Source of the DNA: Geosiphon pyriformis uo1
Lineage: Eukaryota > Fungi > Glomeromycota
DNA length: 64,000 nt
Reading direction: 5' to 3'
Assembly: GCA_016748015.1 (NCBI GenBank)
Contig: JAAOMT010000040.1
Location: 750,754-814,753 of the forward strand
Shown one piece after another: positions 24,889-38,293 of this stretch. Below the pieces are notes generated by a model that was not told the origin of the DNA, did no database searches, and saw only the letters and a program-made list of their open reading frames with translations. A program made the position numbers and the translations under genes. Position 1 is the first letter of the stretch, and every line of letters begins with the position of its first letter.

Positions 24889-27023
24889 TCAAGGGATATA
24901 AGGTATATTAAAAAGGGTTGGTCCGGGTCTGCTTTGATCTAAAGGCCCAAGAATTTTGACCGATGGCAGTTCAGAAAGCTGTAAATTAGTTAAGGGAGGA
25001 TTTAGATTAGATGGCGCCTTTTTCATTTCAGATATTGGTGCTGGCGTTGGCGGGAGAGGTCGAGGAAGTAATCCAGAATTTGAGGGAATATCCCGTTTTA
25101 AAATTTCATGAGGCTGAGGTTGCTTTTTACGTTTGTAAAATAAGATGATCCCGGAGATTACGATGATACCAACCAAACTACCACAAACTCCTCCAACAAT
25201 TTTTAAAACATTGGGATGACTCGAGTCGTCTATTATAAGAGAATCCACCCACGTCATATCAGCAGTGTTGAATATCCTTATAAGTTTTTTATCTTCTTGA
25301 GTAATTAGTTGTCGGGTACCATTTTTATATGTTGCGCCTATAAAATTTTTATTTAATCAAAATCCATTTCGGATAATAGAATTCAAATGTTAAAGTTATT
25401 TTTTCATCTTACCGAAAGCCACAATCATATAATGCCTTATCAGTGTTGCGGTGTGGCCGAAGGGAATTAGAGTTTCCACTCCAACTTGATTCGGAAGGCT
25501 TATTGTTTCCCAACGCCACTCTTTTTCTTCCATATGCAAAACAACAAGTGCTTTTTCTATTTTTTCATTTTTTTGTTCATCTTCCCCACCATATATAATA
25601 ATTTTTTTATCAACTAAAAATATATTTTAAATAAAGATTAGAAAGTCAATTGTTTGTGAAAAATACTTTGACGAGAAANNNNNNNNNNNNNNNNNNNNNN
25701 NNNNNNNNNNNNNNNNNNNNNNNNNNNNNNNNNNNNNNNNNNNNNNNNNNNNNNNNNNNNNNNNNNNNNNNNNNNNNNNNNNNNNNNNNNNNNNNNNNNN
25801 NNNNNNNNNNNNNNNNNNNNNNNNNNNNNAAATTCCTTGAATTAGAAGTAATCCTTAATAAAAAAGAATAACAAACTTTAACTTACTATATTTATATTAG
25901 CGAGTCCATTTTGATTTTTTCCCCCAATTATTATAATTTTATCCTCCACAAAAGTAGCAGTATGTTCAGATCGAGCAAATAGTTCATTACCATTAGAGCA
26001 TTGCGTCATTTCACTTCCCTTTTTCCAGTCTTGAAACTCATTGTCAGAGAGGGTGTTTTTATAGATCAATCCATCAATTGGAGGAGACTCTTTTTGGGAA
26101 ACTCCACCAAAAAGAAAAATTTCCTTAGATGATAACGACTTTACTACAGTTAAACCAACACGAGCATTGGGAGCATTGGAATTTAATGTAGCATTGGAAG
26201 CATTGGAACTTTGTGGACTTGGTTGAGCAGTGGAACTTTGTGAACTTGTTTGAGCAATGGAACCTGGTCGAGCATTGGGTTCATTGGGAGTACTGGAACT
26301 TGATTGAGCAGTGGAACTTTGTGAACTTGTTTGAGCAACGGAACCTGGTTGAGCATTGGGTTCATTGGGAGTACTGGAACTTGATTGAGCAGTGGAATTT
26401 ATTGAAGAAGTGGAACTTGATGAACTTAATTGAGGAGTGGGATTTTGTGGATCAGTGGAATTTTGTGGATCAGTGGAATTTTGTGAAAGATTGTAAACTA
26501 GCAGAGCACTTCTTTTGTCTAATTTTAAAGAACTTGGATTAAACTTGAAAATTCCGTCATTTACATTCTATTTTTTGAAAAAAATTGAAAATTGATTTAA
26601 AAGTAGAAGGATTCAAAATTAATGTGTTTTAAAGACCTGTTGTTGCGTTAACCCTCCAAAAAAATAGATATCCTTTTCATCCGTAACCGTTGCTGCAGAA
26701 AAAAGGCCAATATTCAGAACGGTTTTAATTGAAACGTCCGAGATTGAGTAAAATTCAGGTGAAGTCGAATTCACAATTTTTGAAAAATCAAGACAGAAAA
26801 CATCGGAAGAAATAGTTATATTATATAGCTCTATAGTTAATTTCCTTGTATCATTAGATCCTCCAAAGAAACAGATTTTGTTGCCTATATCAGTCGCTGT
26901 ATGTCCATATCTTGGCAGGTTTAATTGTTTACTTACTATGAAATTTGATGAAACCAAAAATGAACATATCAAAGTATAATATATTATAAAAGATAAGAGC
27001 AAATTTTTGAAAATAAAAAACAT
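24889..27023 (-). CDS. kelch-repeat (beta-propeller) type-I membrane protein 1 with Ser/Thr/Pro/Gln/Asn-rich insert
   Basis: Signal peptide; PRYGHTA, ICFFGG, IFLFGG, RSEHTAT, IIIYGG, PFGHTAT..MIVAFG; TM IVGGVCGSLVGIIVISGIILFY then KRKK; exon ~26567-25887 is fully open; spans N gap. Confidence 0.85.
25679..25828. other. assembly gap (N run) inside kelch gene 1
   Basis: run of n characters. Confidence 1.
26190..26485 (-). repeat. coding tandem repeats: 81-bp (27-aa) unit about 2.3 copies plus 18-bp (QNSTDP) unit about 3 copies
   Basis: gagcagtggaactttgtgaacttgtttgagcaa at 26225 and 26306; ttttgtggatcagtggaa repeated at ~26443-26485. Confidence 0.9.
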
Positions 27024-27349
27024 TTCCAATTATTTTTGAATTCAAAAATTATTAAGATGAAAAATCTTCAATAAAATATATATAATTTTTATTGAGCCGA
27101 AGATTGGGCAAATTAACTCTTCAGAGCAAGCTTTAGTTTTAAGATGAATTAATGAATGGCACAATTCAAGTAGTGGGCCTGTGTCACTTCTAAATTAGGA
27201 ATAAAACTCTTTGTAATTTCAAATGCAACTACTTGCCATTGTTGACGTTGTATGCGTCTCACTTTTTTTTTAAATGTACAAACATTAAAAATTGCATCAT
27301 GAATGCATGACCAATGAGACATTGATTATTTTACAAAATAAAAATTTAT

Positions 27350-28750
27350 TCAAAACATTGGTCAGTTTCTTAAAATATCATTTAAAAGTACAGGTCCAGG
27401 CAATCAGAATATGTTTCGATTGATATAGAATTTGTTACCGTTCTATGAAACAGTTCTTGATCTTCATTTCGCCTTCTTCTTTTATAGAGAAAATTGTCAC
27501 CAAAATTCTCAAAATAGCTCCAATATTTAAATTTTTAGGCTTTGAAGTATTAGGACTTGTTTTCGGATTTTCTTTTTCTTCTTTTAGTTTTTCTTGCTTT
27601 CTTTTTTCGACTCATTTCAGATTTTCTATCATTTTTAATTTGATTTATCTTTAGCATCTAAAATTTTCAATAAAGCAAAATATCTATTCCGAAAATATCT
27701 TGTTTGAAAAAATAGTTAAAATTTTGCCTTATTAAATAGAAACTAAACAAATTAAATGTAATAATCATAAAATCATAGTATAAAATGGTCGAGTGTCGAT
27801 AATAAAAAATGGGTCTGAACGAATATTGGTTCAAAAACAATAATTTCTTTTGTATTACTTACTTTTTAAAGAGAATTATTCATCTGATGATCAAAAAAAA
27901 TCTATTCTCAGAGTAAAATTACAAATTGCGGTGTGATCTTTTCGTCCTGGTACATGTATATCATTAATATGGAAAGCAACAATTAGTCATTGGTTTAAAT
28001 TTATTCAAAATATTTTTAACTCGAAAATTAAGAACTTATTATAAATGACTTCAAGTTCCAAACTTATTCATTTGATTAACCTTATTCATAGGAATATATT
28101 GGGCCTGATGAACCTACAATAAAGACGAGAAGCCCATTTTTATGTATGACCAAATATAGGTTAAGTAAATCAGGCAGTGGAGTTACTTGTCATTTGCTGG
28201 ATTCGTAGTCTCAACTTTCCCATCTTTTGAACCCTCAAAATAATAAATGTCGCCAGATTTATATTCAATGGGTAATTTTTGACCAGAAAATTTGAGGTGA
28301 TTTAGGATCCCGAGTTTTTATCAAGATTATAGATCTATACTTTATCTGATAGCTTCGGCTTGAATGAATCAACAGAATGATAATCAATTAAGAGATATCT
28401 TTTTGAAGAAACTGCAATTGACACAATTGATTCGTTGGCTTCATATATCGTTGCCGTTATTATCTACTTCACCAAAGACATATAATTCATATTTTATCCC
28501 AGCCCATATAAGTGGTGCCTTACTGCTTAGCTTCATAAAGCTTGGATTATAAGTTGCATTATTGGAAAGCTTTAATGACCATAATTCTTAATAAAATTTT
28601 TGGCCCTAAGAAATATATCGAGGAATCATTTAGGACGACACATTTTACATAACGACTTTTTGGCTTAACTTGTGCAATTAATAAATTAAAATTTAGAAGA
28701 AGTAAATACAGAAAGAATTGGATTTTTTTTAAAGATATTATATTTTGCAT
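27350..28750 (-). pseudogene. decayed third kelch-repeat membrane protein paralogue
   Basis: Signal peptide MQNIISL..FFLYLLLLNFNLLIAQ, SIYFLG, ELYVFG, HVPGRKDHTAI followed by GT donor, YYRHSTILYYDFMIITF, degenerate TM LNIGAIL; multiple stops/frameshifts. Confidence 0.65.
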
Positions 28751-29033
28751 TGCGACAGCAAAAATACTCAGTGTCTCAAAAGTTTTGTGGCATCAAAGAT
28801 CCCCTTTTTCGTGAAGTAATACAAACAAACAGCTATATTTACAGAGCTACAGATCCAAATCTGGATATGTTAACGAACCTCGAACCATTTTTATCGATAA
28901 AGCCAAAAAATTAGAAATCTTTCGACATTTGAGCTACTTCAGATAAGGATTAGGTGGTGAAATTTCGCTCCCGGAAATCTTATTGATAAACACAAAAAAA
29001 CTTTTACTTTTCCCGTGCATCGATAGTATCACC

Positions 29034-31120
29034 ATGAAATACTCGGTCGTTAAATATATATTTAGAGTTTTTTTTCTTTGTAGTTTTTTTTTATTAGCAT
29101 TTTTTTCAACCATTATTTCAGCATTATGGCCAATTCCTCAAAAATGGGCCAAAGGCGAAACTACATTAAAAATCTATCCTAGCCTGAAAATATCCACCAA
29201 CCGAATCTCTAATAAATTCATCCAACAAACGATTCACTCAGCTACGCAGCGCTTTCAGTCATTTCTCGCCAATGAAAAATTTATACCTCCAAATCAACAA
29301 TTTCCTGCTCCCAATTCATCAACGAAAATAATTCAATCTCTCATCATAGAACTCGTTACAGAAAATATAGATCTTTCTTTAGATGTTGATGAATCTTATG
29401 ATTTATGGATTCCAAATACTGCTCCTTTATTTCTTTCAATTAGGGCTCATCTCAAAGCGAAAACAGTTTATGGGGTTCTTCATGGATTGACCACATTTTC
29501 TCAGTTGGTATATCAAAATAAATTGCAAACTGATGACTCGTTGGTGGTCCCGTTTACTCCGCATCGTATCATCGACTATCCTATATACCGACATCGTGGT
29601 CTACTTTTGGATACTTCGAGAAATTTTTATCCCGTAGAAGATTTGTTACGAACACTTGATGCGATGAGTTGGACGAAATTTAATGTATTTCATTGGCACA
29701 TTGTTGATCAACATAGCTGGCCAGTTGCTAGTGAAGTCTTTCCTGAATTAAGTGGAAAAGGTGCATATGATCCGAAAACTATGATTTACACAAAACAAGA
29801 TATTGAAACTATTGTCCATTATGCGGCTCAGGTAGGCGAAGGCTTCAAGGGAAGATTCCATTATGAGATCATTACTCGCTTTTTAAACGATTGTACCTGT
29901 AGAGAGGCATTCGCATCATTCCCGAGTTTGATATGCCTGGCCATACCGCATCGATAGCACCGAGTCACCCAGAAATGTAAAAATCTCCCGAAATTTGATA
30001 CTTGTATTTATTGAAAAATCTTCATTTTTGTGATACCAATCATTTCGACTTAGAATATCATGTCACAATGCTCAACCTAATTGGAATGATGTAAAGTATT
30101 TTTGACGATTATTAGTATTTTCTTGGGCGTTCAATCTTATACTTTTTATCTGTCCATTTTTTAATAATAGTTTGCATATGAGCCTCCAAGTGGCCAACTT
30201 GATCCAACGCTACCCGAAACCTACCAATTCATTGACTCTCTAATCACAGAAATGACAAGTTGGTTCCCTGACAAAGTTTTCCATGGCGGTGGTGACGAGA
30301 TTAATTTGCGCTGTTGGAATGCATCTGCACATATTCGAGAATATGTCGCCAAAGATTCTTCGTTTAATCTCGATAGCCTAATTCAACAATTTGTTCAGAA
30401 GCAACATGATATAATAATACGACAGGATAAAATTCCAATGGCATGGCAAGAGCTTGTGATTGATCAAAGTTTGCAGCTTGAAAAGCAAGTAATAATTCAA
30501 GTTTGGAATGGGGAAGATAATGTGAAACGAGTTGTTGAGGCTGGACATAAGGTGGTGACTGGTCCTGCTCGGTATTGGTATCTGGATTGTGGACATGGAA
30601 GTTGGTTGGGTAATAATATAGAGGGTCAGAGTTGGTATGTTTCTTCGACTAGTATTCATTTCTGTTTTGCACGAATTTTTCACTCATTCAGACTTATTTC
30701 AAAAGGTGTGGAAATTTTAAAACGTGGCAATGGATGTACACCTACAACCCTAGGAACGGGCTAAACGAAGAACAAAAAGAACTAGTAATTGGAGGTAATT
30801 GTGTTATACTGCATTATTATATGATAGAAATTGGCTCAAAAATTGATTAAGCTCTATTTGAAATTCTATCAGGTGAAGTTCTCCTATGGAGTGAACAAGT
30901 CGATCCAACGAATTTCGAGCCGACTTTGTGGCCACGTGCAGCAACTGTTGCAGAGGTTTTATGGTCAGGAAACTACGATCTTAGCGGAAGTCCTCGCAAG
31001 GTAACTGAAGCTTTGCCACGAATAACCGAGCTGAGATTCAGGATGGTCAGTAGAGGGATCCGTGCCGAACCATTGCAACCTTTGTGGTGCGCTCGTACTG
31101 GAACTTGCGATCGCCTCTGA
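29034..31120 (+). CDS. GH20 beta-N-acetylhexosaminidase (secreted, about 6 exons)
   Basis: ALWPIP, DESYDL, HRGLLLDTSRNF, KFNVFHWHIVD, RGIRIIPEFDMPGH, catalytic FHGGGDE, WYLDCG, GGEVLLWSEQ, LWPRAA. Confidence 0.95.
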
Positions 31121-33992
31121 CCGTTGAAATAAATAATTTTTGCCATTTATAATAAGAATTTAAAAGCATCCTTTTGTTACAGCAATTAAACAAAAATGCA
31201 TTACGAAATGAATTCAAAATCTTTTTATTTATGCATAAAAAATTTACAGTGAAAATACATCAAAATAGAAATCAATATTCAGAATAATTTATTTTAATGA
31301 AATTAAACGGCTTCGTTTCAAAAATTGTTGCTTGAAATTTTTAATAATTGTTCGTGTATAAGAATCATTTGGATCAAAAAACATTTGACAATATCTTTTT
31401 ATTTTATCACAAATTAGAAGTACAAGTATTTTGAAAATAATGCATATGTATCAAAAAGTATTCTTAATTAAAGTTATTTATGAAAAAAATCTGTTTTCAT
31501 TATAGCATTCAAAATTAAGCCTATTATTTTTTTTTAAATCTTACGTTAGTCTATGAAGAAAAATTTTTCATTGAATTTTTTAAATAACTAATTTGACTCT
31601 CATAATTCTTAATTGGATAAAATATCTTAAAGTAATACTAAAAGCTACTTTATTGAAGACTTACAATAGATTTAGATAACTCAATAATAAATTTTTTGAC
31701 TGAGAAACATATAAATCAAAATTTTATCCAAAAGAAATCTTTTTAGCATCTGAATTAAATTATATATTTTTGCCAAAAAAAATTTAATTATTCATAATAA
31801 ATGCCAAGATATTTAGAGATATATGAATAGTGAAAAGCTAACAAGAAATTTAAGCTCTCGTTACTTATTTAATTCTTTGAAATAAAAATTTAGTTATTTT
31901 GTTGACATTGTGATTTTTTTTAAGCAGATTAAAGAAATAGGCTTAACCCAATTTTGCTAGTGTTTTTTTCTTAAAACCTCTCGCATGTATCGAAAAGCCG
32001 CTTCATGTAATGAATCAAATTCAGAAAGTTTTAAAAAAAACCATTTGAAATTGTTATCGAACTTGTTGATGAGTAAAACGCTTTGAGATAAAAGATGATT
32101 CTAAAATTTTTCGAAAAAATTTTCATTTAGAAATATTTATTTGGCTTAATTGAGTGAATATTTTCAATAGTTGAAGTCAAAATCTTGAATTTAAATTGTT
32201 AAACCTGTTTAAACGTGTAAACACAAGAAAATTAATTACATGCGGATGAATTTCTGTATGACCCTGGGAAAAATCCATTAAACTCATTTTCATTAAACCC
32301 CTGCAATTTCGGCAGTTGTACGCTTCAAATCTCTTTATGTTCCACACCAGCTACAAGTCTTAAATGTGTAAGTCTCATTTTGGATGGCAACCCGGACTCA
32401 TAACTCTTCGACTTTGGCGATCAGACGTTGACAGAAACATTAATGTGCCCAGGAGAGCATTTCACAATTCATCATGTTTGTTACTTCAAACTGCAAGACG
32501 ATAATTGGATCAAACTTTCAAATGGAAAATACGATCGCCTTTCTGCAAATTTTACTTTGTAAATGCACAATTTTGTCTTTCACCCATACCATGGAATACT
32601 ACTAAGCGAATGTTATAGAACGCCGAGATCACTAAAAATTGCTTGGATACAGTTGTTTGCTTGGGTTTAATGGATTTGTCTTTCGGTTTGATAGACCAAG
32701 GAAAACATTCGTTTTTTAGTCTTTCGAGAAGATGCAAGCTTAGGTTCAAATGCTATTTTATAGGATTATGACCACTCATTTTTTTGTAGTTACTGTCAAA
32801 GCATAAAATCCACAGCATGAATTTATCTTTATTATTAAAAATAAGGTTTATATTAAAAAGTTACATTTAAAAATTGTTTCTTTTAAGAGACTAAAATCTT
32901 TACCTTGTGCTAATGTGCATAGGCGTGCATTGACAAATGTGAAGATACGAAACATTAAAAAATTCCACAATAATAATTGAAAATTCTGGGTACAAATCAT
33001 AATAGTTTATGTGACTGTAAAGAAAAATGATATGTTAATATCTTTTGTTATCACTGTATATCGCGCACTACTTTTTATGATGGTTGTGTCTTGCATTAGC
33101 TGCTTACCGTCATTCGCATTCTGCAAATGAAGACAGTGTTGTTGGCGAGAATATTTTGTGTTTGTCCAAGGTTTAATTGTCGAAAAGAACCCCGAGTTTT
33201 GAAATATAGAGGAGGTGGAAGGCAAAGTGGCAGATACGATCATAATGATAACCATAATACCTGAGATCTGAAATTGACACATAAGCCGATATCGCTGAGC
33301 CCTTTTGTCACTTGAGATTCTTTTTTTTGCTTTGCACTATAACTGCGGGGTAAAAGTAGCCCCTCTTGTTAACTAAAGTAATGGTTGTAGTGACGGCTGC
33401 ATTTTGGAAAGTTGTTCAGAAAAATGAGAAGGAAAAAGTTGAGATGACAAAAAGAGTGGGGCACTTATTGTCAAGATTTCAAAGTATTTTATACAGAAGC
33501 AAACAATTTTCAGCAGCCTCAATTCAGGAATGACACATAAGATGACTGACCATAATCAATAAGGCCATTATTTTAGGAGTCATTCCCAAAGATATTGATT
33601 GTGTTCAAAATCATTAAAAATACTTGAGATTTGAATTTGCAAAAAAATATAATAGAACAATTAGAAATTTGTACATGTACATCATTTGATAATATTTTAA
33701 TTTTAGAATTTATTTTCATAGAATGTGTTTCTAATTAAAAAGTGATAATCTATTTTCGTTACACTTGAACAAAATGTAGTGTTCATGTATTGTGAGGGGT
33801 TAACACAAACACCTAAAAATTTAAATTCGATTCCTCACCCCGGAAAATTATCGGCAAATACATGCTGTAGTGTACTAAAAAGTAATAATCCACCGGTGGC
33901 AGTTTCTAGTTCTCCGACAAAGAACACTCAAAAGCCCTTTTCATTGCTTCTTTTTTTTCGGTATTTTTAACGAAATTTAAAAATATTATATT

Positions 33993-35248
33993 ATGTCATC
34001 CGCTCCTGGAGTTTATCAGCCATATAGTCCTCTGAATAAAAATTCGCTTGAGTCAGAATCACAAAATTTACGTCATGTTTCCTTGCCCGCTCCTCCACAA
34101 AATAACAATAATGATCATTCACAAAGAAGCAGTTATCAGAATCTTAAAGAAGAAATTCAAAAATTGCAACAAGAAAATGAACGTCTCAAACAAGAAAACG
34201 AACGGTTGACCATGCAAATAATCACTCAACAACATTTCGGTAATGCCCTCAATACTGGCTGGAGTGATGATGACATATATAACTCCGTTAATTTGCGTGC
34301 TGATATTGCGAAACTTGGCGACTCCCTTAACTATATTACAAGTCTCAAATTCAAAAATGAAATTGTAATCAATAAACCAAATGCGTTACAATTGATGACA
34401 AAATATAAATGTCGAAGTGCTGAATCCATGAAACATGCGCATGAAGATGTTGATATTTTCAATACCAATTTACCTACTGGTATTGACTTAAAGCAAGTAT
34501 TGAAAGCAGCTCTTCAACGCCATCTCGTAGAATCCATTTTAGATCTAATTAAGGTTTATCTCGAGGCTGCTTTGAAGCGCACTGAAAATATCACTGATGA
34601 ACATGCCTTGGAAGCACACATTATCAAACTTACGAATGATTTAATAATTCGTATGACTGATCTTAGCATATTTCGTATTGGAAATGACGACCTTACGAAG
34701 AAATTGCCTGTGAAATTGCGTCAACAAATTGCAGCCTCTTTGGGAGCTAGAGCCTTTATTCAAAATGATAATAAAAATCCCTTTTTAGAAAAATCCACCG
34801 CTAAAGTTATAAATCTCCTGAATGAATGTCGAACGATTAATAATGTTCAAAAGAACCAAGATATTGCTACCAAAGCTCGAGCAGTTGTTGTTGAGGTTAT
34901 TCGTGTGTTTTATTTTGCCTTGTATACTCAAGATCCCGTACCAGATATGATTTTTTACGAAGCTGGAGATCCAGTTAATTTTGAATTGATGGAGGGTGCA
35001 TTTGATCCTAACGAGATTGAGAATCTGGAGGTAATTGATCTCTTATTTTTCATTTTCGTGAAATCAGCGATCAGCTCTAACACAGCATCATTCTTTATTA
35101 GGTGGAAGTTTGTTATTTTCCAGTGATTGGGACGGATCTCAACAATTCTGAACGGAAGTTATTCAGGAAAGCTCAAGTGCTCACTGTTCAGAAAGCGTCT
35201 CGTCAAAATCTTGCCACTGTTTCATCTAGAAAAAAATCGAATGTTTAA
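33993..35248 (+). CDS. uncharacterised coiled-coil protein with conserved C-terminal MEG...VEVCYFPVIG...KAQV domain (2 exons)
   Basis: Long ORF 33993-35030, GT..AG intron to 35101, exon 2 VEVCYFPVIGTDLNNSERKLFRKAQVL; heptad LQQENERLKQENERL. Confidence 0.8.
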
Positions 35249-36348
35249 AGATCAAAATTTCAGAGGTTTAATGAAAAATAAATTATTTAAATATTGCTAG
35301 CTTTACATATATACTATATAAAAATAATTAAACTTGTCAAGGATCTCAATTTTTAAGAATTTGAACGCTCAAAGTATGAAAAATTTGATCTCTAAATCTG
35401 TTTTCCAAATTCCCTTTTCACCAAGTAAGATACAGGATCCAAAATAAAAGGAATAGGCATGATTTAAGGTCATAAAGAATTCCAAGATTTAGATTAATAA
35501 TTGAGATAAGTAAAAGGAATTTTCGAATGCAAACTTTTTTTATAAAAAGTTTTTATTATTATTGACAAAATAAAGGGAAAGAAGTAATGTAACTTTAAAT
35601 GCCAAGCTAAAAAGTCTCAGGTAATGAACTCTAGCTCGTAATAATTTGACTCAATTCAATTTTCGTAATAAAAATTAATGTTGAAATTTCTGTCACGAAT
35701 AAGAAATTAATATTCAAAAAAATTTGGTAACATGAACATACTTAAGATTTTAATACCGCAAGCTAAATATTTCAAGTTTTATGATTAATGCTTTTAACAG
35801 TTTCTTGTTTTAATTCGAAATCTCAAGGTTTTCATTTCACTGACGAGAGAATTAGATTCCAAAAGTAAAATTTCCTATGCACATCTTTGAAACAGAGAAT
35901 TTAGTTAGGTCACAACAATTATCTCAAATCGTTTAGTTTGCCAAAAATTTTTAATCGTATAGGCCAAACAACAAACTGAGAAGCTCAAGAATATAAAGAC
36001 CATCAATTTTTTAGAAAAAGTTTGAATAATTTTCTAAATCAAAAAATATTTTCACTCTTATAGAGTAAAAAATTGTTCGAAAATACAGTTGAACTTAATT
36101 AAATATCTAAACTTTCCTTCCTCATTTTAAATGATTTGATTAAAATATTTAAATTGAGGAAGAAAGGTTTAGTTTAAACTTGTTATCTTAAGATCATATA
36201 TTGGACGAACTTTGAAAACTTGGGAAATCAAATTTCTTAAAAAGGGAGTTAAATATAAATCCTGTTATTTTGTTTAATATCGAATTAAAACAAATTCATT
36301 TTGTAAAAGAATAAAAGATCAATAGTCATGTAATTGATTAATTCAATT

Positions 36349-38293
36349 TTATGTTAATGGAAAGCTGGACTTTGATCCAAATAAGGGGATTTGAAAAAGG
36401 ATAGGAGCAGAACTGGAATCCAAAGGTGGACGGGATTGTACGGATGGAAAATCTGATATATGCAAATTTGTCAAAGAGGGATTTAAAGAATTCAAACCTT
36501 CTGGTTTGTCAGGGATAAATGCAGATACTCTTGGCAATGGAGGTAAATATGGTGGCGATGATAGAGTTCGTGGTTTTACAAGTGTATCTTGATGAATTTG
36601 TGAGATTTTTGTACCTTGAGAACGTTTATTTCTATATAGAAACAGCCCTATTCCAGCTATGAGACCGAGGAAAACGAGTCCACTAATTGTTCCACCAACG
36701 ATTGCCTTTGACTTTTTATTGCTACCTAATTTGGCTTGCTGATCGTTTTTTTGGCTACCTAATTTAGGATCGCCTGGACTCTCTGCGAATCCCTCAGAGT
36801 TATTATCCGACCTCATGAGCCATTCAAAGTTGCCATCATTTGTATTAAGAATGGTAATTTTTTGTGAAACATTTGTTCGGCCGGATTCTTTTTCGATACC
36901 TAAATATTTTCGAAGGATAATTAAATTTATTAATGGCCTAAACCTAGATAAAAAATAAAAACAATAAGATATTATACCAAAAGCTATAATCATATAATTT
37001 TTAAACATTGTGGCAGTATGGTAAAAAGGTACAGGTATAGGTTGAGATTTCACTGAAATTTTAGTCCACGTCCAATTTTTTGTATCGAGGATAACCAAGG
37101 GGTCCGATAGTTCCTGATCTGAATTACCACCATATACAATTATTCTCTCATCCGACGCTGGGATAGAAAATTTGTTAAAAGAAAAAATTGAAATTAAAAT
37201 AAGAAAGAGATTCATAGTACGCAACTAAAAAATTTTTTGAGTTGAATTGATGAAACTCCACCTAAGACTGCTGTATGGCCACCACGATTTTTCGGTTTAT
37301 AATTCCCCCGAATCTCCTTAAATAAGAGAGCAAAGTATAAAACATTGCTTCCTATGAAAAACTGATCCTATAATAAAAATTAGCAACCTACTTGCTTTTT
37401 CCAAGTCGAATTATTTATGTTAAATATATGGATCTATTTTTAAAATTGAAAATTGAATATGAGATCGGGAAACGATGAAAAAAAACTTAAAATTTTCGTT
37501 TTACTTACCTCATTCATTGAATATTTCCCTCCAATGAAAACAATTCTATTATTATCTTTTAAAAAGGTAGCCGTATGATCATAAAATGATTGCAAATTAA
37601 ATAATTGCCCATAAGGTGGTTGCACATAAAACCAATTTTGCTTCTCATTATAAAAAATGATATTTTTTGAATTCCGAAATTGTTCGTCCAGGGTGTCAGG
37701 TTCCTTTTGAGGAGTCCGGAAACAATAGATATATTCTCCAGCGTCTATGACAAGTGGAAATCGTCGACGAATATACGGTGAACACGGTTTTATATCTGAA
37801 ACGCCCCACTGTGGATTTTCACTTTGTAATTGAAATTCAAAGATATTTTCGTTGTGGGTATATGACTGTGAATTCGTTGATGATTTTTTATTCTAAATCA
37901 AAAAAATTTGAGAATTTTATGACAATAAAAATTCAAGGTTGAACCTTTTATGCATATACTTACCGTTAAACCACTAAGAATTATAATCCTTTTATCAGAA
38001 GTAACAACGGTAGTAGCCCATATAATTCCACTAGCTGACGAACCAGTAACATCTAAATTTGGAAGCGTCTCATATTTCGGTGAGCTTATACTGAAATTAT
38101 TTGTAGAATTGAAACCGTTTGCGGGAAGATCAAGGGAAAAAAAATCACTAAAGATTTTTTTTCCATCAACTCCACCAATAAAATATAATTTCTCGCCGAC
38201 GAGGACAGCAGAATGGCCGTATCGTGGCAGAGAATAGGCATTGATAATTTCAAAAGATATTATAATTGTATAAATTAAAAAAGGAAAAAACAT
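36349..38293 (-). CDS. kelch-repeat type-I membrane protein 2 (about 6 exons)
   Basis: Signal peptide; PRYGHSAVLVGEKLYFIGG, YDHTAT..IVFIGG, NRGGHTAVL, IIVYGG, PFYHTAT..MIIAFG; TM IVGGTISGLVFLGLIAGIGLFLY; Pro-rich tail. Confidence 0.9.

Follow-up and report, generated by a model that had tools for sequence, protein, structure and literature searches.

The window analysed here, 64 kb of AT-rich eukaryotic DNA from Geosiphon pyriformis, a fungus placed in the Archaeosporales (Glomeromycotina), holds two genes, referred to below as gene A and gene B, for single-pass membrane proteins with kelch repeats whose tails end in a conserved motif of about 35 residues. An earlier note, made from the sequence alone, had described them as two intact paralogues with well-aligning tail ends. 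Both genes lie on the minus strand where it had placed them, and every string that it quoted is present. The description as intact applies to gene B, whereas gene A is cut by an assembly gap across which the canonical join is out of frame. The observation of the tail motif is real and extends beyond the window. Positions of the two genes and their features in the window are as follows.

24889-27023, minus strand: gene A, interrupted by a gap, of the same plan as gene B
27023-26637, 26567-25887, 25613-25413 and 25337-24889 (stop included), minus strand: assured exons of gene A, with open frames
25989-25990, minus strand: internal GT donor in exon 2 of gene A, which joined to the acceptor before 25613 gives an in-frame product of 537 residues
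25679-25829, no strand: assembly gap (run of N) within gene A
25135-25200, minus strand: membrane helix of gene A, 22 residues from I-V-G-G, with GGVCG and GSLVG (a GxxxGxxxG run), then KRKKQPQPHE
25042-25062, minus strand: RPLPPTP of gene A, which fits the class I SH3-ligand pattern [RK]xxPxxP
24901-25005, minus strand: C-terminal motif of gene A, L-N-P-P-L-T-N-L ... T-L-F-N-I-P, 35 residues, with three more before the stop
36349-38293, minus strand: gene B, complete, six exons (stop included), 513 residues
38293-37964, 37892-37509, 37433-37392, 37316-37262, 37157-36978 and 36899-36349, minus strand: exons of gene B, built from three-frame translations
36634-36705, minus strand: membrane helix of gene B, 24 residues from A-I-V-G-G, with two GxxxG (GTISG and GLIAG), then RNKRSQGTKI
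36529-36546, minus strand: proline-rich LPPLPR of gene B, no strict class II SH3 ligand (PxxPx[RK])
36385-36486, minus strand: C-terminal motif of gene B, L-N-P-S-L-T-N-L ... I-L-F-Q-I-P, 34 residues, with 11 more before the stop

Gene B is intact. Its spliced model measures 1542 nt, is divisible by three, has one stop and keeps GT-AG at all introns. It is represented at NCBI by the hypothetical protein G9A89_018300 (P0001), whose residues 43-480 are identical to the last 438 residues of the model. The public entry agrees with the model from exon 2 on, while its first 42 residues are in the wrong frame with a spurious intron, an error by which the hydrophobic start and the first kelch motif (Kelch_1, 29.0 bits in exon 1, 37964-38293) are both missing from it. 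The start of a third Geosiphon member, G9A89_001441 (P0002), is also mis-set, and the open frame at L003:57-428 gives it a hydrophobic N-terminus. Two public gene models are corrected here. The splice sites were assigned from consensus and from the NCBI model; the spliced models of genes A and B served only for in-house sequence comparisons, and the database searches used single exons or P0001 and P0002.

The most conserved part of these proteins is their extreme C-terminus. In a multiple alignment of nine intact members, all share within the last ~35 residues the core P-P-[LM]-T-[NS]-L-x-x-S-x-[LF]-[PS]-[SP]-V-x-S-R-x-P-L-[DQ], in which T, L, S, V, P and L are invariant. A typical core reads P-P-L-T-N-L-x-x-S-x-L-P-S-V-x-S-R-x-P-L-D and is followed by a second half, P-x-L-[LF]-x-I-P, present in seven of the nine. 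Identity between the proteins, both among the Geosiphon paralogues and between Geosiphon and Ambispora, is 48-65% in the motif, compared with 25-31% in the propeller and 16-32% in the linker. For genes A and B, the proposal that the tails are more alike than the ectodomains held when it was put to the test: 20 of 34 motif positions are identical (59%), against 79 of 282 in the ectodomain (28%) and 9 of 31 in the linker (29%), and their last exons match in BLASTP with an E of 3e-12. Synonymous sites are saturated among gene A, gene B and the third member, and identical motif residues are written with different codons in 8/13, 8/13 and 9/12 cases in the three pairs. Different codons for identical residues place the constraint on the peptide and not on the DNA.

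The tail end had also been called undescribed, and the searches agree with this. Three tail pieces found no Pfam family, there was no usable match in the ESM Atlas, and a profile search of the PDB returned a chance match alone (E 0.81). As far as such sequence comparisons reach, the motif is undescribed. Its first half follows an L-x-x-L-x-L-S-x-L pattern like one leucine-rich repeat, and it is with this half that the hidden Markov model (HMM) of the motif matches a leucine-rich repeat protein of Camellia (P0028); this was taken as pattern similarity only, and homology to leucine-rich repeats was rejected.

The remainder of each protein has a recognizable plan. Pfam, whose kelch families include PF24681, PF24981 and Kelch_1-6, detects kelch motifs in both genes (exons 1, 2 and 5), and they exceed the cut-offs in gene A (exon 1, Kelch_4 at 28.4 against 21.6 and Kelch_3 at 26.5 against 22; exon 2, Kelch_4 at 25.9 against 21.6) as well as in exon 1 of gene B (Kelch_1 at 29.0 against 20.1, Kelch_2 at 26.9 against 21.3). 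Whole relatives exceed the cut-offs of the long kelch models, matching PF24681 at 104-181 bits with a cut-off of 50, and the Attractin/LZTR1 propeller model is among the best Pfam matches. An AlphaFold model of the third Geosiphon member P0002, computed with an 18-sequence family alignment and standing in for genes A and B, has six four-stranded blades, mostly at a predicted local distance difference test (pLDDT) of 85-95, with a predicted template modelling score of 0.72. A helix follows at 366-403, and then a tail with pLDDT below 50 in which a helical turn of three residues is the sole structure inside the motif. Among solved structures, Foldseek placed KLHDC10, KLHDC3, KLHDC2 and LZTR1 closest to this model (E about 1e-17 to 1e-15), all of them peptide- or protein-binding propellers.

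In all members with a complete start, a hydrophobic N-terminus directly precedes the first kelch motif (R-Y-G-H). Ahead of the helix, each ectodomain has 7-9 N-x-S/T sequons; its cysteines number 1-4. Each helix has two or three GxxxG, and four or five of the next ten residues are Lys or Arg; genes A and B both have two GxxxG and four Lys/Arg. The architecture of kelch ectodomain, single helix and basic stop-transfer given in the earlier note is correct. From these features we infer a type I topology. The helix itself is generic: in the library search, well over a hundred unrelated proteins with a single membrane pass, all those read looking fungal, matched this segment alone, and the family helices score 26.4, 25.6 and 19.6 bits against the Pfam model TM_ErbB1 (PF21314), below its cut-off of 27.1, with unrelated fungal membrane proteins scoring alike. 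The small-x3-small face and basic stretch shared with the ErbB-type transmembrane-juxtamembrane segment are a compositional resemblance and not homology. On sequence grounds, a GxxxG helix with a basic stop-transfer is common in fungi and no mark of this family. Some members have a further Lys/Arg cluster before the helix, on the presumed outer side (R-G-R-K-R-K in P0002, K-K-R in P0003), which is not conserved in gene B. Such clusters could be dibasic processing sites for shedding of the propeller.

How far does the motif extend? A profile search of the Geosiphon genome found three intact motifs, in gene A (79.9 bits), gene B (82.8 bits) and G9A89_001441 on contig C376, as well as a fragment and two copies resembling gene A, at C376:12.3 kb and C574:20.1 kb, which are decayed and frameshifted. 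Just upstream of the gene A copy on C376, an isolated remnant of the motif, N-P-A-L-K-N-L-R-L-S-E-F-P-P-V, flanked by stops, lies at C376:14497-14559 (L028). A profile of the last exon gave 11 matches below 1e-10 among 1.84 billion representative proteins, and of the library matches those that cover the tail came from Geosiphon (two proteins) and from Ambispora leptoticha and A. gerdemannii (six). The expectation that further family members would carry the motif was thus borne out by the third Geosiphon gene and the six proteins of Ambispora, a genus of the same order. A word search with one Ambispora tail returned Ambispora only. Among 178 proteins, the motif-only HMM scored 47-97 bits in nine members and gave no match in kelch membrane proteins of other genera, including Rhizophagus, Gigaspora, Cetraspora, Diversispora, Mucor and Linnemannia.

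Proteins of the same plan are widespread in the Mucoromycota (Rhizophagus, Gigaspora, Cetraspora, Diversispora, Backusella, Mucor, Rhizopus, Linnemannia, Fennellomyces). They are uncharacterised and carry automatic names such as 'galactose oxidase' or 'Attractin/MKLN-like beta-propeller domain-containing protein', and they share the signal-type N-terminus, a propeller of ~350 residues, the Gly-rich helix, the basic stop-transfer and a low-complexity tail. They differ in that those scanned have no C-terminal motif, and their tails are unrelated to one another. The sequences therefore place the Geosiphon and Ambispora proteins, as we read them, within a Mucoromycota-wide uncharacterised family, in which a composite short linear motif of ~35 residues sets a subfamily apart, and this motif marks a subfamily seen so far only in the Archaeosporales. 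What is new is the motif subfamily; the wider kind of kelch membrane protein is already known but uncharacterised.

Two of the A. gerdemannii proteins deserve mention in their own right. P0005 and P0006 (5362_t and 5360_t) both bear the motif and are encoded on one contig of 19,557 bp, which suggests a tandem duplication. Before its motif, P0005 has three copies of a module of ~27 residues ending Q-P-L-Q-A-E-Q-S, two of which begin S-R-x-L-P.

The completeness of gene A turns on its gap. A GTAAGT donor (after 25887) closes exon 2 in phase 0, the next assured exon, 25613-25413, begins in phase 1, and the canonical join across the gap runs into a stop after ~20 codons. In the relatives, the same interval holds two mini-exons (42 and 55 nt, gene B) or one fused exon of 102 nt (third member), which encode the part of a kelch blade I-x-I-F-[DN]...W...R-x-G-H-[ST]-A-V that is kept in every relative. 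Since the run of N sits exactly at the blade exon or exons of the relatives, the canonical reading of gene A requires coding sequence inside the gap. The only in-frame splice, from the internal donor, drops one conserved blade's worth, and five blades would remain; the NCBI model of the copy on contig C376 (P0004) uses the same blade-deleting junction. In a search of the assembly, the flanks of the gap were found in just two places, gene A and C376:12.9-13.3 kb, each gapped at an identical position, and no further match in the Geosiphon genome was found for the third member's blade exon. The C376 copy (L021, C376:12.3-14.2 kb) has a frameshifted and truncated tail. It is 100% identical to gene A over ~900 bp round the gap (window ~25300-26200) and 73-97% identical elsewhere, and this block of identity points to gene conversion or to a collapsed assembly.

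It is conceivable that gene A is defective, a pseudogene or the source of a five-bladed or truncated product, which would leave gene B and the gene at C376:167-171 kb as the sole working members in Geosiphon. The out-of-frame canonical splice, the loss of a blade in the in-frame alternative and the frameshifted tails of the two gene-A-like copies elsewhere all fit such a defect. Set against them are the assured exons, which are all open, the intact tail motif, the piece of blade before the gap, which retains its kelch signature and ends at the GTAAGT donor, and the exon structure of the relatives, which predicts coding sequence exactly at the gap. On balance a defect seems unlikely, and gene A is probably, if not demonstrably, complete. 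Exon 2 of gene A also contains an 81-nt tandem repeat (2.2 copies, 97% matches) at ~26180-26490, with shorter repeats nearby, which encodes a Ser/Thr/Pro/Gln-rich insert in a propeller loop. At the alignment position of this insert, A. gerdemannii P0010 has a long Ser/Gln/Pro-rich insert.

We favour, with moderate confidence, the explanation that these are type I single-pass kelch proteins whose conserved tail motif docks one cytosolic partner. After a cleavable N-terminal signal there would be, outside the cell, a kelch propeller of six blades, a module for binding proteins or glycans; a single membrane helix, whose small residues form a GxxxG face, would connect it to a Pro/Ser-rich cytoplasmic tail that is intrinsically disordered. 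Purifying selection on the protein would keep the motif, with the propeller and the remaining tail left to drift. On binding, the motif would fold upon one conserved cytosolic partner, which may be a signalling adaptor, a ubiquitin ligase or a sorting factor, so that different propellers would feed one intracellular step. It is the position of a short, selected and disordered peptide, at the end of a drifting tail on divergent extracellular propellers, that suggests a docking site.

Animal Attractin and MEGF8 offer a precedent for such an arrangement: they are single-pass proteins with an extracellular kelch propeller, and their cytoplasmic MASRPF recruits the E3 ligase MGRN1 (PMC8254101). The Geosiphon and Ambispora proteins are like them in having an outer kelch propeller and a variable tail with one short conserved peptide, for which docking is proposed by analogy. 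Unlike Attractin and MEGF8, they match only kelch families in Pfam and have no CUB, EGF, PSI or lectin modules; MASRPF is absent from all tails read, the nearest stretch being S-R-x-P-L-D. Attractin/MEGF8 would therefore be the nearest analogue for the mode of working, and membership of that family is not claimed. The yeast cell-wall-integrity sensors Wsc1-3, Mid2 and Msb2 are type I proteins as well; their Gly-rich helix leads into basic juxtamembrane residues and then into a short, disordered tail to which a cytosolic factor is recruited. The plan is alike, but the outer part is a folded propeller here and a mannosylated Ser/Thr rod in the yeast proteins, and no WSC domain or Mid2 match was found by Pfam in the exons of genes A and B, P0002 or P0005.

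Several observations weigh against the docking explanation or narrow it. In G9A89_001441, the third intact member, only the first half of the motif is present, and with two further Geosiphon copies having frameshifted tails, the family may be decaying in this fungus; gene A may itself be incomplete. The motif matches no described linear motif among those that could be compared. Basic residues precede the helix in several members too, and the positive-inside rule alone does not fix the topology. A search of public sequencing runs for gene B listed no RNA run. The restriction to the Archaeosporales was deduced from protein databases and from a three-sequence profile. Finally, in a tree of the ectodomains, built without the fragment P0006 and the partial near-duplicate P0155, the proteins with the motif do not form a single clade, and three changes are needed; this tree is poorly resolved, and a single origin of the tail would be compatible with it.

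Variable propellers combined with one invariant cytoplasmic peptide provide a concrete experimental handle, a bait peptide of 35 residues. To our knowledge, no surface receptor of the Glomeromycotina has been tied to partner recognition. A literature search found no partner-recognition receptor of this group built on a kelch ectodomain. The lineage of Geosiphon holds the only fungus known to take up cyanobacteria (PMC8786786). By analogy, the motif might be where a signalling or receptor-turnover pathway confined to the Archaeosporales docks, and through it divergent ectodomains would report surface partners, Nostoc for Geosiphon and plant roots for Ambispora; we regard this as a speculative proposal with a small chance of being right. 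If it were true, these would be the first candidate symbiont-perception receptors of an early-branching lineage, working like Attractin/MEGF8-MGRN1. If the motif is merely a sorting signal, or if the genes are unexpressed, what remains is an annotation note on lineage-specific hypothetical proteins.

A sorting role would go together with a propeller that is no receptor at all. The ectodomain could be a membrane-anchored extracellular enzyme, a lectin or a wall or adhesion protein, and the motif could only place or recycle it (export from the endoplasmic reticulum, polar delivery, endocytosis). The database names of relatives, such as 'galactose oxidase', would agree with this, as would the mucin-like inserts that gene A and one Ambispora member have in their propellers, and no kinase or other catalytic signalling domain was present in any member scanned. 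Nor did a kelch receptor kinase turn up among the loci and proteins examined. Automatic names, however, derive from Pfam repeat names, the model is six-bladed, its nearest solved structures are binding propellers with galactose oxidase absent among the matches listed, and 35 conserved residues are unusually long for a sorting signal. A non-receptor role of this kind is accordingly given a low probability, about as low as that of a defective gene A. Identity with galactose oxidase was itself considered and rejected, since that enzyme has a seven-bladed catalytic propeller with further domains, compared with the six blades and no extra folded domain of the P0002 model.

Less probable still is that the proline-rich sites of the tail bind SH3 proteins (Sho1-, Bem1- or Sla1-like) and that these form the shared link of the family, as the earlier note had supposed. 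Its reading of RPLPPTP in gene A as a class I ligand is correct, the aligned R-x-L-P-S-[IV]-P of four A. gerdemannii proteins fits [RK]xxPxxP as well, and the Geosiphon genome encodes SH3 proteins, one of them single-pass. LPPLPR of gene B, in contrast, which had been likened to a class II ligand, is not a canonical PxxPx[RK]. Strict class I sites occur only in gene A and those four A. gerdemannii proteins and strict class II sites in none, so that gene B, the third Geosiphon member and the A. leptoticha proteins P0003 and P0007 have neither. Because strict sites are missing from several members, SH3 binding cannot be a shared feature; moreover, the Pro-rich linker is the least conserved part (16-32%), and such patterns easily arise by chance in Pro-rich sequence. 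As a separate observation, the stretch L017:1297-2598 (C733 ~743.1-744.4 kb) encodes a single-pass protein with the same type of Gly-rich helix and a cytoplasmic SH3_1 domain (37.4 bits, cut-off 22.9), a plan that recalls yeast Fus1.

That the tails resemble one another only because of recent duplication, gene conversion or a constraint at the DNA level is extremely improbable: conversion or collapse does occur at the locus, as the ~900-bp block of identity between gene A and its C376 copy indicates, but that block covers the gap region while the tail there is 73-80% identical, most synonymous sites in the motif differ between gene A, gene B and the third member, and the motif persists in fungi of two families.

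Between the two kelch genes, the window contains a GH20 (beta-hexosaminidase) gene on the plus strand at 28983-31120, with matches to PF00728 of 107 and 97 bits in two exons, and an open frame of 377 residues at 33993-35126 that has no clear family.

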